Sequence record: OQ708376.1
Direction: 5' to 3' (one strand)
DNA: 64,000 bases
The notes beneath the pieces are model-generated. The model was not told the origin of the DNA. It ran no database searches and worked only from the letters and a program-made list of their open reading frames with translations. The position numbers were made by a program, and so were the translations under genes. Positions 21,162-35,097 of the stretch are shown piece by piece (position 1 is the first letter of the stretch; every line of letters begins with the position of its first letter).

Positions 21162-21194
21162 AAGAAAAGGGAGAACTGACGTTCTCCCTTTTTT
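21161..21194. terminator. bidirectional terminator between convergent genes
   Basis: AAAAGGGAGAAC-TGAC-GTTCTCCCTTTT with A and T tracts on both sides. Confidence 0.9.
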
Positions 21195-23207: not shown

Positions 23208-23238
23208 AAAAGAAAAGGCCAAGCATAGACTTGACCTT
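23208..23238 (-). terminator. intrinsic terminator
   Basis: Minus strand AAGGTCAAG-TCTATG-CTTGGCCTT followed by TTCTTTT. Confidence 0.7.
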
Positions 23239-23247
23239 AATATGTTA

Positions 23248-24615
23248 TTAAACTACAGAAACTCCACTCATTGAAGGTGGAACGATTTGTTCAGCAATTA
23301 ATAATAAATTAGTTACTGTAAACTTACCACCATGTGACATTAACGTAATAGGTGTTCCATTAGTTACTAGGTTACCATTTTCATCAACACTTAAAAATGT
23401 ATTAAATGAAATAGTATCAACCGTGATAGTTGGTGTTCTAACTTGATTAATATTATTAAATTGAGTATTTGTAAAATTAATAGCAAAACTCATATTAGAC
23501 GAACTAGTAGTCCATGTGCCGTATATATTTAATTTGAAATTTAGAGAGGAATTGAAATTATAAACATTTAACTTATTACTTGTTGTATTGAAGAAACTAT
23601 CTAGTGTTCCACTAGTGGGTGTGAATGATTTAAGTATTTGAATTAAATTTTGTTCAATTCCATCAGTGAATTGTATATTTAAGTTTGAATAATATAATTC
23701 TCTTTTTCTACGAATTAGGTTAGTAGTATTATTACCATTAACAAATAATCCAGTACTATCTGATGTTAATATATTACCAGAGGTATTACTGATTTTAGAT
23801 GAAATTACATTAGCGTCAATAGATATACCATTTCCCGCAGTATATGAGGATGGTCCAGTTGGAACATACAACCCATTTACGTCAGTTGTTAACGTATTTC
23901 CTGGAGTTGTGCTTATTTTAGTTGAAATTGTTTCTGAACTAATAGATATACCAGTACCACCAACGTAATTTATTCTTGTATTAGGTACAAATAATCCAGT
24001 ACTGTCAGTAGATAGTATATTACCAGAAGTAGAACTAATTTTAGTACTGATTACTTCACCACTGATAGAAACACCGGAACCAGCACTATAAGATACTGAA
24101 TTATCAGGCACAAATAAACCATTACTTGTAGAAGATAGTATGTTTTCTGATGTCGGGTCAACCTTCACACTTATTACATCATCACTAATAGTAATGCCAG
24201 TACCAGCATTGTAAGTTATCGAATTATCCGGTACGAATAGACCAGTACTATCAGTTGTAAGGATATTTCCTAAAGATGTGCTTATTTTTGATGATATAAT
24301 ATTATTATCTATTTTAATACTGTCACTACCTGTATATGTTACTGTATTATCAGGTACATATAAACCATTAGAATCATTACTAAGAATATTTCCTTGTGTT
24401 GAACTTATTTTTGTGGATATTAAATTAGAGGATATTGATATACCAGTTCCACCTTGATAGATAATAGTGTTATCTGGAACATATAAACCATCACTTTCAT
24501 GAATTAAAATATTTTTATTTTTAGTACTAATATCAGGCACTGGTATCTTGCCTATTAGTTCTCCGTCATAACTAATATCACCATTTACAATAATATCTGT
24601 TCTTATATTATACAT
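23248..24615 (-). CDS. repeat-shaft fibre with C-terminal Sf6-type tail needle knob domain
   Basis: Start at ATG 24615 (AAGGA RBS). Six 41-aa repeats. The C-terminus RRKRELYYS..LKSFTPTSGTLDSFFNTTSNKLNVYN..FKLNIYGTW..FLSVDENGNLVTNG..LLIAEQ parallels the recalled Sf6 gp9 knob sequence. Confidence 0.75.
   Translation of the reverse strand: MYNIRTDIIVNGDISYDGELIGKIPVPDISTKNKNILIHESDGLYVPDNTIIYQGGTGISISSNLISTKISSTQGNILSNDSNGLYVPDNTVTYTGSDSIKIDNNIISSKISTSLGNILTTDSTGLFVPDNSITYNAGTGITISDDVISVKVDPTSENILSSTSNGLFVPDNSVSYSAGSGVSISGEVISTKISSTSGNILSTDSTGLFVPNTRINYVGGTGISISSETISTKISTTPGNTLTTDVNGLYVPTGPSSYTAGNGISIDANVISSKISNTSGNILTSDSTGLFVNGNNTTNLIRRKRELYYSNLNIQFTDGIEQNLIQILKSFTPTSGTLDSFFNTTSNKLNVYNFNSSLNFKLNIYGTWTTSSSNMSFAINFTNTQFNNINQVRTPTITVDTISFNTFLSVDENGNLVTNGTPITLMSHGGKFTVTNLLLIAEQIVPPSMSGVSVV
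23735..24468 (-). repeat. six tandem ~123-bp (41-aa) coding repeats
   Basis: Unit Y.(G/A)G.GI.I....IS.KI....GNIL..DS.GL(F/Y)VP. Confidence 0.85.
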
Positions 24616-24634
24616 ATATTTTTCCTTATAATGA

Positions 24635-24664
24635 AACAAAAAAGGTCAACAATAGTTGACCTTT
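24635..24664 (-). terminator. intrinsic terminator
   Basis: Minus strand AAAGGTCAAC-TATT-GTTGACCTTT followed by TTTGTTT. Confidence 0.8.
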
Positions 24665-24669
24665 ATTAA

Positions 24670-31500: not shown

Positions 31501-31903
31501 TACCTTTAAATGCTGTTGTTTCAGCAACTTCTAAGTTTTTAACTTTAGTTGCTTGTAGAGTGGTTGTACCAGCAGTTTGTGTAAAATCAGAACCAACTGA
31601 TACAGTACCGTTAAAGGTAGCGTTTGAATTAATTGTTGCTGTATCAGACCCGACCACTGCACTACCGATTGTAGTATTACCCTCAACACCAAGACCACCA
31701 GAAAGTGTTGCTTTGCCACCTACATCTAAAGTAGATGTAATATTGGCAGTTGATGATTCAATGGCAGTAAAAGTTGCATTTGCAAAAGTTACAGTACCAT
31801 TTACAGTTAGGTTATTGTTGAAAACAGCATTTCCTTTGACTAAAAGATCCTTACCAACCGTACCAGCACCAGTAATATCTAAGTCAGTTTTTATTGAGTA
31901 CAT
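25514..31903 (-). CDS. long tail fibre (2129 aa, T/G/S/V/A/N-rich repeats)
   Basis: Uninterrupted ORF; GGAGGG RBS; TAAATA at 31939-31944; beta-repeat shaft; C-terminal tip domain with YVKQDATGNR..LNKTANSVTIY. Confidence 0.85.
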   Translation of the reverse strand: MYSIKTDLDITGAGTVGKDLLVKGNAVFNNNLTVNGTVTFANATFTAIESSTANITSTLDVGGKATLSGGLGVEGNTTIGSAVVGSDTATINSNATFNGTVSVGSDFTQTAGTTTLQATKVKNLEVAETTAFKGNITADVGTTAAFDKITANTAEITNVSTTDISSTGTATFKDVTISGTLGGEFNLSDLNAVTLNVTGASNQQGAVTFGANVTGINSTATFKDIRIGSNSESQTFRLSFPYTAPGKRPTVILQNEIQSELMSPANLTVLTSASFGNASLSSYGITGNGLNKLDYLTVSGNNTQSPDTPLLEVQKGKTKVADFEVTGTATIPNIESTGTANFNNINISGVLGGTFQLDDINAVTLNVTGATSLVGGVTLGSNITGYNSTATFKAISLGQNSQDAAVKLGFGYTAPGQRPTVILPNEVQSEVVSPSTLNVLKTATFGNASLSSYGITGNGLNKLDYLTVSGNETQAPDTPLLEVQKGKTKVADFEVTGTATIPNIESTGTANFNNINISGVLGGTFQLDDINAASLNVTGATSLVGGVTLGSNITGYNSTASFKAISLGQSSQDSAVKLGFGYTAPSQRPTVILPNEVQSELVSPSTLNVLKTATFGNAALSTYGITGNGLNKLDYLTITGNATQDPSTPFLQVGGKAILNDVDFTGTVTGLTVDVSGQDLTPNSVVAATNIKGATLESTGNTTVGAKLTVTGDIAGTTATLSGALSAGSVSSGSITGTTSVSAPTISASTEVTAPTITASGTVSGQTINGTNISATTLTAPTISGNTNFTENVDITGNLTVTGTVTPGTIDLSTTDVSAKSITTTAGANIGGDLVVQGSFDLSAADINVKSLTSSGIVKSNDLVNANVLPVLNSTTITATTVNADDITVTGSANLGTIYSSSSVLVGSTLTVTGETTTASLVTPTISNASGVTISNNTNVTGDLTVTGAVIPGSIDLATTDVNAKSITTTAGATIGGNLTVNGTVDLTTADVTVKSLTSTGAIVSNESTISSVLPKLQSTDATIATLGSTTANITNLNVTGASTVADVTSSGKVKAVSVETPTISNVDGVSISNNTSITGDLTVSGTVTPGAIDLSTTDVSAKSITTTAGANIGGDLVVSGTVDLSGSDVSVKSLTSTGIITVSSAEGINVLPKVQSTEVTVSALNATNAVVSGDVSAATASISGAITGGSATLSGVGTALNVTNNATVGGVLTVGSITSAAENVSITKNTAITGNLAVSGTLTAGVIDLSTTDVSVKTLTSLGDATVQGNLTVDGSIDLSSANIVGVTLESTGSTTVGTDLILTTGNITGSPSISGNLGVTGTTTLTGATTVSNTLSTGGKLTVNTGGIQVVDGGIQVDAGTITAPSANISGDSTLNSATVTTTLGVTGAASMNGGLTASTLDVTGDSTVQKLTVKGAFIPEGGLDLSGADLNVNSVTAATTLSVTGASTLTGGVSTSTVTASGKVTAQELSTGTLAVTTNGTVGGTLDVTGKATVGSLDSGAISATSGTFSTTLGVTGAATFGNNVNITGTLTPGALDLSSTDVDANSLSVATTLHSNGNATIGGTLGVTGAATAPSIALNGEGTALAVTNNATIGGTLGVTGKATVGSLDSGAVSATSGTFSTTIDVTGAATFGNNVNITGTLTPGALDLASTDVVANSLSVATTLHSDGNATIGGTLGVTGAATAPSITLNGEGTALAVTNNATIGGTLGVTGAATLGSLTTSGAVKTGSNVIIGTKIGEQPETVQIFPNTYIAGSLRVDGGINADIDVSGQTIEPYAVVAADTISAAGNITSGAELISKSATIGDVGSQNNNLTINGNVVNNGNFTVTGVLNATLNQANSDVAVKSLTATNSVAAGTSITAGTSITATGLLKGNTLEVTTTGSFGGAVTMSSGANITGTVGITSGNLTVGGDISATGTATLAATSVTTITTSGAATLASASVTGAATIGGTLTVTGLMTANGSVVLGDAAADTLTVNATSSFKENAVFDKDVTVTGQLTTTNADLTTTTVTTKKYDVIPNQVTSSVIAPTGTWTPDGTSNVYFITLDQDTTLAPITGLIGGGKASSVYIYVKQDATGNRNFTTDGTYAVVDGTLNKTANSVTIYQVIYDGVSPVTDMFIAQRTA
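26750..27430 (-). repeat. two tandem 336-bp (112-aa) near-identical repeats in the long fibre
   Basis: CCTTCACCATTAAGAG occurs at 26811 and 27147; duplicated VGSLDSGA...TGKAT unit. Confidence 0.9.
29995..31395 (-). repeat. three tandem 510-bp (170-aa) repeats in the long fibre
   Basis: AATCTAATTTGTTTAG occurs at 30001, 30511 and 31021; ATGTTCCACCAAGAACACC at 30331 and 30841. Confidence 0.9.
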
Positions 31904-32005: not shown

Positions 32006-32034
32006 AACCAGACTTATTTAGGACAAGTCTGGTT
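32006..32034 (-). terminator. intrinsic terminator with TAAATA spanning the loop
   Basis: Minus strand AACCAGACTT-GTCCTAAAT-AAGTCTGGTT followed by TTTT. Confidence 0.7.
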
Positions 32035-32042
32035 AATTTTTT

Positions 32043-32939
32043 TTACTTACCAGAGATGACAATCTTACCACTGAAAGAAATATCAGAAGTGAAGATTACA
32101 TCACCAGTACTACTAATTTGTGTATCAGTCACTACCAATTCAAATGGAGATGACGCAACACTCCCAGGTGTTTTATTTGCATAAATTGAAATATACAAAT
32201 TATCTGGTGTTTGATTGTGTTCAGATGCAGGAATAGTGATTGTAAAATCACCAGCACTAGAAACCCAATCTGCTTGGTTTACCAATTTACTATAAGGTAC
32301 TGTCATTGTTGTTGCTCCTATAATGTTTACTTTAACACTTGCATAATCTGTGATTTGACCAATCACATCAATTGTTATATCCCCAATACCACTAACTGTT
32401 ACTGTGGTTTGGAATACTGATTCCAATGCAACATTACCTGGGTCACCTTGTAGTTGGATCATAATATCAGAACCTCTACCATGAACTGATTCTGGTAGTG
32501 TGTAAGTATAATGATCAGTAGTATCTGGTACTAATGTAAATGCAGAAACAGGAACTATTTCAGTAGTTACATATGAACTATCAGTCCCAGGTGAGCTACC
32601 TTTAAATGGTTTCCAAATACCAAGATCTTTAATATAAATTTGAAGAACATTAGTACTATCAACCAAAAAGTAAACGTCACCATCTAGACCGATTGAATCG
32701 GATGGTGCTGTTGTTCCACGTAAGATACCAGAACTACCACCACCACTGTGTGCGTTTAAATATCCCAATGTAACCAAGTGTGTGTTTGCAGTTGGTTCAC
32801 CTGCTGAAATTGGAAGAAGTTGTGTTCCTGAGTAGTTTTGAATTTGCACAACACTACCATTTGTGGTAATCTGTGCACCATTCTTCCCAAGAATGAAGGA
32901 CTTCTTCATGGTTCCTTCTAAATTAGAAAAAACTGCCAT
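32043..32939 (-). CDS. fibre/tailspike adaptor-like structural protein
   Basis: N-terminal ~110 aa is paralogous to the adjacent tailspike (MAVFSN.EGTM...FILGK.GA). Two C-terminal modules resemble the C-terminus of the 21196 protein. Confidence 0.65.
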   Translation of the reverse strand: MAVFSNLEGTMKKSFILGKNGAQITTNGSVVQIQNYSGTQLLPISAGEPTANTHLVTLGYLNAHSGGGSSGILRGTTAPSDSIGLDGDVYFLVDSTNVLQIYIKDLGIWKPFKGSSPGTDSSYVTTEIVPVSAFTLVPDTTDHYTYTLPESVHGRGSDIMIQLQGDPGNVALESVFQTTVTVSGIGDITIDVIGQITDYASVKVNIIGATTMTVPYSKLVNQADWVSSAGDFTITIPASEHNQTPDNLYISIYANKTPGSVASSPFELVVTDTQISSTGDVIFTSDISFSGKIVISGK

Positions 32940-32955
32940 TTTAATATAATCTCCT

Positions 32956-35097
32956 TTATGGTAGGGTTATGTAAGTTACGGGTTGGGCAGCTTTTAATGC
33001 TGCACCAGCGGCAGTTGCTGTTATGATAGGATCTGCAATATCAATTCTATATACGTTGTTTACAACATACACTGCACGAGTTATATACGTTCTCAAATCA
33101 CCACCATTTTCACCAGCACCGGATATAATGATCTCAGTACCAGCAGCTTTTGCATATTGGTTTTCACCCCATGACACACCCAATGCTTCTATGTATGTTT
33201 GTCCTGCTACCGTTTGTCTAATTGTGTCATATTTTCCGAAAAAAGAACCACCAACAGTTACAATATATTTTCCACCCGATTGTTTATGAATAATCGTGCC
33301 TTCAGAGAAATAGCGTCCCCCAGGAAAAGTATCGTATGGAATATAATATTGCTCAACTACAGGTATCAGTACTGGGCCACGGTGACCTGTACCATCGATT
33401 GCAGTTGTAACTTTAAAGTTATTAGATGATTGGTCTATTCTGTCTACATACATTTTAGAAAAACTATATTTTGAAACATTACAATCATCTTGAACAACAC
33501 AGTTAGTCCAATTAGTATAAGTATATTTAGAGCGAGTATAGATACCACCACCTTCGCCTTCGGTAGAGAGGTGTTGACCAATTACATCTAATTCTTTAGT
33601 TCTAATATCACTAAATTTAGATGATGATGGCAAACCACGCCAAAGGATTTTAGAACAAGTGATATTGCTCAATTCTGTATTATTTAACCAATTATCAGAA
33701 CCGGAAGTATAAACAAGTATAGAAGACTCTGGAATATAGAGATTAGAAATTTTAAAGTTTCTAGGTGGTCCAGCAAAACGACCAGAAGTTACACCCCAGT
33801 TTATTGAAACCATTCTATTTGTGATAGAAGGATCATTAAGCAAATGACCAGTCAACCCATCAATAATGAATTCTTTCGAACCATAAGTTATAACACCAGC
33901 AGTGGTTAATCCAGTACCAACAGAAACTAAAGATGATGGATAAACTTCATTATTAAGTATTTTAAAGTCCATTCCTAATTCAACGTGTATACATTGTCTA
34001 ACATTATATAGTCTGTTATTTTTAATAACAAAGTTTCTGACATATTGTGTATCTGGTGCATCTAAACCATAAGGACCAGAACCAGCAACGCCAATACCAA
34101 TGCCCCAGTTTGAAAGTGGGATTGGAGCGTTAGAACCATCAACGTTTTCAATTACGTTTCCTTCAATCACAAAACCATCAGGATAATGTGAGTTAATTAC
34201 GTTTAGTTCAATTGCATCACCATAGATATCATGAATATGGTTATATGAATATCTACCAACCTTCATTTTCTCACCAGTACCTTGTTGAAGAACACCATAC
34301 TTACATTGGGTCATTTCATTAAAGCAAAAATCTATTGTTCCTGGTTGTGTCATACCTTGCATTAAAAATGCAGCAGTACTTGTGATGTTTATAAATTTAT
34401 TAAAATAAAACTTACCATCGCCACCGAAGAATTTTAAATAACATCCAGTAAGTGTTGCAAATTGTATTTGGGAATTAATAACAGATACCATAGTACCACC
34501 GTTACCAGTAATAGTTCCCCCAAACCAAGTTACATCTTCTAGGTATATTGCAGTTTTGATACGGTAATTACCACCAGCCTGAATTTGGATTTTATTTTCT
34601 TTAGCATAAGCAGCACATAAATTTACAGCAGCAGTGTCATCAGTTTCGCCATCACCTTTAGCACCAAATTCTTCTGGTGTTATATAAAACTGGGCCTGTT
34701 GAACTGTACCTCCAGTAATAAGTCCGATGAAATCGCCACCATTTTTACTGGATAGAACTTTTTTATTAATGTATAATGATTTTACCCATGTACCATTACT
34801 TTTTGCAAAAATATCAACAATACCATCTTCATCAATTTGAAAATACGTATTATTGTTCTTTCCTACATCATCGGTAGGGGGTACAACACCAAATAATGCA
34901 TTAGGGTTATCTTCAAGATATTTTACGTTAACTGCTGAATTAGGGTCAGATGAAGTTCCTACCTTCAGTGGTAGGAACTGTTCTCCTAGATAATCTTTTA
35001 TAGAAACTGAATCATTGATAAAATTTATTGAAGCACCTTTTTTCCCCAATATGAATTTGGGCTGCATAGTTCCTTCAAAATTAGAAAATACTGCCAT
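32956..35097 (-). CDS. tailspike with WcaM-like beta-helix, putative colanic acid depolymerase
   Basis: PEEFGAKGDGETDDTAA pectate-lyase-like start. The segment DIYGDAIELNV...NWGIGIGVAGS..Y......VRNFVI.N......RQCIHVE.G parallels E. coli WcaM as recalled (DLQGDAIEWNV..NWGIGIGLAGS..VKNFVVAN..RQLVHVENG). Confidence 0.8.
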   Translation of the reverse strand: MAVFSNFEGTMQPKFILGKKGASINFINDSVSIKDYLGEQFLPLKVGTSSDPNSAVNVKYLEDNPNALFGVVPPTDDVGKNNNTYFQIDEDGIVDIFAKSNGTWVKSLYINKKVLSSKNGGDFIGLITGGTVQQAQFYITPEEFGAKGDGETDDTAAVNLCAAYAKENKIQIQAGGNYRIKTAIYLEDVTWFGGTITGNGGTMVSVINSQIQFATLTGCYLKFFGGDGKFYFNKFINITSTAAFLMQGMTQPGTIDFCFNEMTQCKYGVLQQGTGEKMKVGRYSYNHIHDIYGDAIELNVINSHYPDGFVIEGNVIENVDGSNAPIPLSNWGIGIGVAGSGPYGLDAPDTQYVRNFVIKNNRLYNVRQCIHVELGMDFKILNNEVYPSSLVSVGTGLTTAGVITYGSKEFIIDGLTGHLLNDPSITNRMVSINWGVTSGRFAGPPRNFKISNLYIPESSILVYTSGSDNWLNNTELSNITCSKILWRGLPSSSKFSDIRTKELDVIGQHLSTEGEGGGIYTRSKYTYTNWTNCVVQDDCNVSKYSFSKMYVDRIDQSSNNFKVTTAIDGTGHRGPVLIPVVEQYYIPYDTFPGGRYFSEGTIIHKQSGGKYIVTVGGSFFGKYDTIRQTVAGQTYIEALGVSWGENQYAKAAGTEIIISGAGENGGDLRTYITRAVYVVNNVYRIDIADPIITATAAGAALKAAQPVTYITLP

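Follow-up and report, generated by a model that had tools for sequence, protein, structure and literature searches.

A 64,000 nt stretch of sequence record OQ708376.1 (the window, to which all coordinates refer as a whole) carries on its minus strand a gene for a 455 aa protein with an N-terminal anchor, a repeat shaft, and a C-terminal knob. We propose, with a probability of about 0.7, that this protein forms homotrimers and serves as an optional side fibre in a jumbo myophage of the Rak2-like genus Asteriusvirus. Escherichia phages PBECO4 and vB_EcoM_CRJP21 (CRJP21) matched the window region at 100% identity, and phages UB and BAU.Micro_ELP-22 (ELP-22) matched it at 94-97%. Judged from these identities, the source of the window belongs to Asteriusvirus, whose members are Rak2-like jumbo myophages with a size of ~350 kb. 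The knob fibre gene was likewise 100% identical to the PBECO4 and CRJP21 genes. In the proposed mechanism, the 27-residue anchor would dock the trimer on the virion, at the adaptor used by the long tail fibre or at an equivalent one. A beta-structured shaft of ~41 aa repeats, with a copy number of 2, 6, or 9 among near-identical phages, would carry the knob, and the reach of the tip would differ because the copy number differs. The jelly-roll knob would serve as a secondary adhesin or sensor that touches some component of the host surface. The gene would be old at its slot, and the 121Q-type phages would have lost it by deletion between the flanking hairpins.

The knob domain

An original prediction, made from the sequence without database searches, had placed an Sf6/HS1 needle knob at the protein's C-terminus, and profile, sequence, and structure comparisons agreed with this assignment. 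Residues 301-443 matched the Pfam model PF16532 (Phage_tail_NK), the hidden Markov model (HMM) that the prediction had named as a check, at 96.3 bits (E 2.1e-27; profile positions 34-175 of 175), compared with a curated gathering cut-off of 27 bits. The knob sequence matched the HS1 and Sf6 knobs in the PDB at E 1.2e-27 (4K6B) and E 1.6e-27 (3RWN), and all of the knob motifs quoted in the prediction were found in the translation. In the AlphaFold2 (AF2) model, the predicted local distance difference test (pLDDT) score of the knob was mostly 73-90, with dips to 51-65 in three 10-residue blocks. A Foldseek comparison of the knob model with 3RWN gave E 3e-13, a target template modeling (TM) score of 0.82, and a root-mean-square deviation of 2.3 A over 143 columns at 40% identity; the next structural neighbours were PRD1 P5 and then C1q/TNF-type domains. 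On the evidence of sequence and model, the C-terminus is a true Sf6/HS1-type knob, with a predicted trimeric jelly-roll fold.

Leavitt et al. (2013; PMC3741392) reported that HS1 residues E181, K235, S283, and D285 contact bound L-glutamate and are invariant in all homologues. The aligned residues in the knob of the window protein are E306, K361, S409, and D411; all four contact residues are kept, and they mark putative binding sites. The original prediction had also ended the protein at the motif IAEQ. This was not the case, as 12 further residues come after IAEQ, and a similar C-terminal tail was present in the orthologues and in the Ackermannviridae homologue SFP10.

The repeat shaft and the trimer model

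The six 41 aa repeats that had been claimed for the shaft were confirmed. Seven G-L-[YF]-V anchors, at residues 43, 84, 125, 166, 207, 248, and 289, recur with an exact period of 41 residues, and the double units are mutually 50-57% identical. Tandem Repeats Finder detected no DNA-level repeat in the gene, suggesting that the copies are old. No model for the shaft repeat was present in Pfam or NCBIfam, and NCBIfam gave no match for the knob fibre or for its 654 aa neighbour. Searched against the PDB, the repeat profile found weak matches to the Afp tailocin fibre (8UUR, E 0.0072; 8UUS, E 0.013) and a still fainter one to an adenoviral fibre (8ON5, E 1.6). The PHROG family phrog_1030, labeled 'tail needle knob', matched residues 135-454 at E 4.2e-70 over profile positions 4-267 of 268. 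The AF2 monomer model predicted beta-hairpins and no helix in residues 1-300; its pLDDT was below 50 across residues 1-298, where the model is unreliable.

The number of full repeats varied between phages: two in a protein of 291 aa in the same slot of a 345-kb Asteriusvirus contig (P0002), six in the window protein, and nine in the 578 aa protein of ELP-22. The extra units of ELP-22 are diverged copies and not fresh duplicates. More distant relatives had a repeat period of 37-43 aa, and the copy number within the phrog_1030 relatives was 2-9.

Three copies of residues 192-455 were then modeled together, a check that the original prediction had also suggested. The median of three runs gave an interface score (ipSAE) of 0.88 (range 0.88-0.89) with a partner pLDDT of 85; of three controls, the best scored 0.00. 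The runs had at least 90% of their contacts in common. In a calibration that used two copies, not three, 21 of 30 solved pairs and none of 23 single chains came up to the mark used for ipSAE. The chains touch one another along the shaft repeats (192-295) as well as at the knob, and on the axis conserved hydrophobic residues face their own copies. The model thus predicts that the protein is a homotrimeric repeat-shaft fibre.

The N-terminal anchor

The N-terminus of the protein had been said to mimic that of the long tail fibre. This likeness proved real by profile tests, although it was weak by BLAST and limited to ~12-14 residues. A BLAST comparison of the two proteins was not significant (E 0.8), whereas hhalign aligned the small-fibre and long-fibre N-terminal alignments over 20 columns with a probability of 93% (E 2.9e-7). 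An HMM of the small-fibre N-terminus was run in six frames over the whole genomes of Serratia phage BF, CRJP21, and 121Q. Besides small fibres, its sole hit in each genome was to the long fibre, at residues 1-12/14, with E 5e-4 in phage BF and E 0.13 in both CRJP21 and 121Q. The two N-termini belong to different PHROG families: the anchor of the small fibre matched phrog_33322 (E 1e-10), and the long-fibre N-terminus belongs to phrog_4549. Both versions are conserved across genera, and within the window a start of this type was found in only two open reading frames (ORFs), those of the knob fibre and the long fibre.

The same slot of Serratia phage BF, an Eneladusvirus, holds three consecutive genes, BF_0223, BF_0222, and BF_0221 (555, 183, and 167 aa; L012 2702..5504). 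All three products start with a MYNI-type anchor, which the anchor profile recognised at E 1e-21 to 1e-23, and their C-terminal parts are unrelated. Taken together, these results point to a common short N-terminal element that would be used by interchangeable small fibres. We infer that the anchor may be the element by which the fibre docks on the virion, possibly at the attachment site of the long fibre, as the original prediction had suggested.

Presence and absence of the gene

The original prediction spoke of an extra fibre, and the distribution of the gene fits that description: it appears from the genome comparisons that this is a dispensable extra fibre gene, adjoining the long fibre gene and absent from the 121Q-type phages. 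Megablast found the gene in only five phage records out of ~40 Asteriusvirus records. In 121Q, phAPEC6, and ~20 relatives, among them SP27, slurp01, JP4, G17, and Sharanji, both flanks are present and ~1.4 kb is missing. A second Asteriusvirus clade (~84% identity) likewise matched the flanks and lacks the segment. The nearest record (G001) gave no match to the knob fibre protein, consistent with this indel.

The indel segment consists of the knob fibre gene and one of two similar terminator-like hairpins, and it is bounded by a short direct repeat, TTGACCTT, that lies inside both hairpins. The two hairpins flanking the gene have AAGGTCAA / TTGACCTT arms in common. Contigs of both forms were present in a wastewater metagenome (X9) and in another sample (X10). 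The gene-bearing form had a depth of 31 in X9 and 8 in X10, and the joint that skips the gene (23239->24665) had depths of 98 and 39, respectively, indicating that carriers and non-carriers coexist in nature. The slot between the DUF4376 protein gene and the gene for the ~650 aa structural protein is empty in 121Q and CBB, and it holds one gene in the window and three in Serratia phage BF.

Origin and age of the gene at its slot

The original prediction held that the knob of a podovirus had been grafted onto the shaft and that this adhesin tip had been acquired horizontally. In its full form, this explanation has the knob of an Sf6-like podovirus recently fused to a pre-existing jumbo-phage shaft, with the low GC content marking foreign DNA. 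The restriction of the gene to ~5 of ~40 Asteriusvirus records, as a clean cassette, would fit such an event, as would its GC content of 0.294, 5.5 points below the window mean of 0.349. The gene is indeed AT-rich, but its composition did not behave as a sign of foreign origin. GC at the third codon position (GC3) was 0.136, within the range of the neighbouring late genes (0.12-0.20). The deficit sits in codon position 1 (0.318) and comes from the composition of the protein, in which 51% of the residues are S, T, I, or N. Moreover, the orthologues in two metagenomic jumbo-phage contigs (L007 and L008) have the same GC offset from their surroundings.

These two contigs also bear on the age of the gene. 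Both have the same order of DUF4376 gene, knob fibre gene, gene for a ~650 aa protein, and thyA. Identities to the window in L007 and L008 were 58% and 51% for the knob fibre, 66% and 53% for the 654 aa neighbour, 43% and 29% for the DUF4376 protein, and 85% and 73% for ThyA, suggesting that the knob fibre gene diverged in step with its neighbours. The presence of orthologues in the identical slot of distant jumbo phages, about as diverged as the genes beside them, speaks against a recent acquisition.

The distribution of the knob argues in the same direction. By tblastn, the domain was found in 290 phage records; carriers included Ackermannviridae, T4-like phages (Pseudotevenvirus and Biquartavirus), a 60-kb Klebsiella phage of unassigned family, and T7-like and P22-like phages, and in many of them the knob is a short stand-alone protein. 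In the T4-like Aeromonas phage 44RR2.8t, the knob gene (288 aa; L020 1066..1932) lies between the major head (gp23) and vertex (gp24) genes, and from this position some knob proteins may have a role associated with the head. Knob homologues outside the P22-like phages, including myophages, had already been listed by Leavitt et al. (2013; PMC3741392), who argued that the P22-like phages were recent recipients of the knob and not its donors. This direction of transfer is opposite to that required by a graft from an Sf6-like phage.

We built a maximum-likelihood tree of 13 knob domains, which included every fetched sequence. Within the shaft-bearing clade, L008 branched first, followed by a protein of an SU10-like podophage (P0009) and then by the window protein together with L007 (support 81/90 and 97/96). 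The podophage protein has another N-terminal domain and the same repeats and knob, implying that shaft and knob move between phage types as one module. Its nesting inside the jumbo clade is thus a point in favour of transfer between phage types, which the graft also involves. However, all relatives have the shaft together with the knob, as does phrog_1030, and the P22-like knob of phage Louie falls outside the shaft-plus-knob clade (support 81/90), so the claimed fusion of a podovirus knob to the shaft was not borne out. We consider a recent graft from an Sf6-like podovirus unlikely, and distinctly so. The gene has probably resided at its slot for a long time, with a deletion between the hairpins in the 121Q-type phages; the alternative, that it came from a related jumbo phage by homologous recombination, is possible, though we favour it less.

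Role of the protein

The setting of the gene is structural. The CBB homologues of its neighbours (CBB_224, CBB_225, and CBB_226) are all virion proteins by mass spectrometry (PMC5259590), and the long fibre of phAPEC6, gp256, was detected by the same technique (PMC7247149). Knob homologues have been met in virions as well: Sajous1 gp119, from a Vi01-like myophage, yielded 16 spectra from CsCl-purified virions, and the homologue in Dickeya phage JA15 is annotated as an 'unknown structural protein'. In GenBank, the CRJP21 record has the knob fibre itself as a 'structural protein', and the ELP-22 record (WPK29744.2) has it as a 'tail needle knob'.

The latter, automatic label, together with a knob domain that is the same as in the Sf6 and HS1 needles, might suggest a central tail needle or plug as in the P22-like phages, which would seal the tail channel and touch the membrane with its tip. 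We regard this role as extremely improbable. Pfam, PDB, and AF2 comparisons revealed no gp26-type N-terminal domain and no coiled-coil shaft, residues 1-300 being beta repeats. The phage type is also a contractile-tail one, as the tail sheath protein gp277 of phAPEC6 was identified by mass spectrometry (PMC7247149), and CBB_240 of the Rak2-like phage CBB is a baseplate hub and tail lysozyme of the gp5 type (PMC5259590). A needle would furthermore be hard to reconcile with a gene that the 121Q-type phages can dispense with. That same dispensability, the flanking terminator-like hairpins with no recognised promoter of the gene's own, and the location of stand-alone knob genes among small non-structural genes in Ackermannviridae and T4-like phages would all be compatible with a product outside the virion. 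It might be a soluble or cell-associated knob fibre that is made in the course of infection, such as a decoy or an exclusion factor, or the gene might be a passenger with poor expression between its two terminators. A non-virion product seems quite unlikely to us, as intact orthologues were kept at the same structural slot across deep divergence, the fibre architecture and anchor motif point to a virion part, and a knob homologue was detected in the purified virions of Sajous1.

A decoration elsewhere on the virion is unlikely too, though less strongly so. Instead of being a receptor fibre attached to the baseplate, the protein might form a whisker on the sheath, collar, or capsid, like those described for phAPEC6 and CBB, and help in loose adhesion. 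In favour of this, the tails and capsids of Rak2-like phages bear trimeric, hair-like appendages with no genes assigned to them (PMC7247149; PMC5259590), and the 44RR2.8t knob gene lies between head genes. However, phAPEC6 and CBB are whiskered and lack the knob fibre gene, so their whiskers cannot be this protein. The gene also lies inside the long-fibre module, and its product has the N-terminal motif in common with the long fibre.

Some observations weigh against the side-fibre reading. Our literature searches found neither a virion proteome or image of a phage carrying the gene nor the publication behind the 'structural protein' label in CRJP21. The knob domain does not in itself fix a location in the virion, because other knob-domain genes sit among early or head genes, as in Margaery and in 44RR2.8t. 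The 12-14-residue N-terminal motif could be a trimer-initiation element instead of a docking element. As a solved structure exists for the Sf6 knob trimer, recall may account for part of the score of the trimer model; for the shaft contacts in the model, there is no solved template of that kind. No promoter of its own was recognised for the gene, which is bracketed by terminator-like hairpins. A metatranscriptome (X20) contained a few 151-nt contigs only, one of them spanning hairpin and gene start, and this RNA-library signal could be DNA carry-over; a raw-read RNA run (X21) had zero reads on the stretch. Finally, gain by recombination into the PBECO4 clade is possible, because most Asteriusvirus genomes lack the gene.

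Comparison with known systems and implications

The C-terminal 143 residues of the window protein are homologous to the knobs of Sf6 gp9 and HS1 (~40% identity), with the same trimeric jelly roll and the four L-glutamate-contact residues. In contrast to those needles, the protein has a beta-repeat shaft instead of a coiled coil, another N-terminus, and 12 extra C-terminal residues; it comes from a contractile-tail jumbo phage, would lie off the axis, and is dispensable. The same shaft-plus-knob module is found in the phrog_1030 proteins, which comprise WPK29744.2 of ELP-22, the PBECO4 and UB orthologues, and the metagenomic proteins P0005-P0010; these differ from the window protein in repeat period and copy number and, in P0009, in the N-terminal domain. 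Stand-alone knobs of myophages share the C-terminal domain and a contractile-tail host phage. They include SFP10_0171, Sajous1 gp119, and LIMEstone/JA15 in Ackermannviridae and RB43, Margaery, and 44RR2.8t among T4-like phages. Unlike the window protein, they are 172-288 aa long, have neither repeat shaft nor MYNI-type anchor, and occupy other genome positions. BF_0221-0223 of Serratia phage BF show the opposite combination, with the same anchor and slot, no knob, and only traces of the shaft repeat.

The overall plan resembles that of the adenovirus fibre, PRD1 P5, and Afp13-type tailocin fibres, in which a short conserved N-terminal tail precedes a trimeric beta-repeat shaft of variable repeat number and a jelly-roll knob. 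Sequence similarity to these fibres is marginal, the knobs are of different families, and a triple beta-spiral fold would be no more than a possibility for the shaft. The resemblance is best treated as an analogy and not as family membership.

Some of this was known before. The label 'tail needle knob' exists in one GenBank record and in phrog_1030, and knob homologues of myophages have been on record since 2013. New are the variable slot, the short anchor in common with the long fibre, the alleles that differ in repeat number, and the evidence that speaks against a podovirus origin in recent times. We tentatively suggest that accessory fibres of Rak2-like phages may share a plug-in slot, in which a long-fibre-like anchor of 12-27 residues would dock interchangeable fibres on the same adaptor. 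Recombination at the hairpins and within the repeats would then shuffle the tips (the knob here, three others in phage BF), the number of genes (0, 1, or 3), and the length of the shaft (2, 6, or 9 repeats). If so, such shuffling would tune host range in natural populations that mix carriers and non-carriers.

Asteriusvirus phages (PBECO4, UB, and JP4) have been considered against E. coli O157:H7 and avian pathogenic E. coli (APEC), and optional receptor-binding parts would help to explain host-range differences between nearly identical isolates. The 121Q-type phages are natural knock-outs, and the alleles with 2, 6, and 9 repeats provide natural variants of length, so that the two sets make up a ready system for investigating the role of the widespread, functionally unassigned Sf6-type knob in contractile-tail phages. 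The result also corrects the view of this knob as a podovirus-specific part.

Neighbouring genes and other features

The features of the window are listed in Table 1. The order on the minus strand is long tail fibre (2129 aa), DUF4376 protein (259 aa), knob fibre (455 aa), and 654 aa structural protein, and thyA lies opposite this module on the plus strand. No terminator-like hairpin was found between the long fibre and DUF4376 genes, which thus look like one transcription unit. The knob fibre starts with an ATG at 24615, with an AAGGAAA ribosome site 7 nt upstream; a longer version from a TTG at 24639 is unlikely, as this codon lies inside the upstream terminator hairpin. A TATAAAT sequence was present upstream of the 654 aa gene and not of the knob gene, and no promoter model was established. 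In a search for a T4-type late promoter, the T4 late-promoter octamer TATAAATA proved under-represented, occurring once in the 64-kb window compared with ~10.7 expected from shuffles.

Table 1. Position of the knob fibre gene, its parts, and associated features in the window.
Feature	Position	Strand	Basis
Coding sequence of the candidate knob-tipped accessory fibre, 455 aa	23248..24615	-	ORF list and translation; stop codon 23248-23250
N-terminal anchor module, residues 1-27	24535..24615	-	Conserved in orthologues and Serratia phage BF paralogues
Anchor residues 1-14, motif common with long fibre	24574..24615	-	hhalign, genome HMM searches
Shaft, residues 28-297, six full 41 aa repeats plus a half unit at each end	23725..24534	-	Anchor spacing, repeat alignment, models
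Sf6/HS1-type knob, residues 301-443, putative L-glutamate sites	23287..23715	-	PF16532, PDB matches, AF2, Foldseek
12-residue C-terminal tail beyond Sf6 knob end	23251..23286	-	Translation
1425-nt segment, present here, absent from 121Q, phAPEC6, SP27, JP4, and others	23243..24667	.	Megablast coverage, junction alignment, contig joints
Terminator-like hairpin between DUF4376 gene and knob gene; 5' indel edge	24641..24664	-	Terminator scan, 121Q junction alignment
Terminator-like hairpin after knob gene; 3' indel edge; one kept in 121Q	23215..23238	-	Terminator scan, junction alignment
Terminator-like hairpin after 654 aa gene	21165..21192	-	
Terminator-like hairpin just upstream of long-fibre gene	32006..32034	-	
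Long tail fibre (2129 aa), residues 1-14, common N-terminal motif	31862..31903	-	Profile comparisons

In the GenBank record of phAPEC6 (L006 7931..10857), ~2.9 kb carries no annotated coding sequence. This region matches the positions of the 654 aa and DUF4376 homologues in 121Q, so it is an annotation gap with the sequence present. In the Asteriusvirus phages UE-S1 (L004 501..4359) and ph0011 (L005 501..4467), thyA is annotated with 1554-1641 nt, compared with 930 nt, and the homologue of the 654 aa protein is longer, at ~756-763 aa. These differences in length suggest that this part of the module is variable too.

Elsewhere in the window, a 298 aa protein (32043..32939, minus strand) and the adjoining 713 aa tailspike (32956..35097, minus strand) have a common N-terminal domain of ~105 residues (38% identity, E 1e-19), after which their sequences diverge. 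This pair is a second case of anchor sharing among neighbouring fibre or spike paralogues in the phage from which the window comes.

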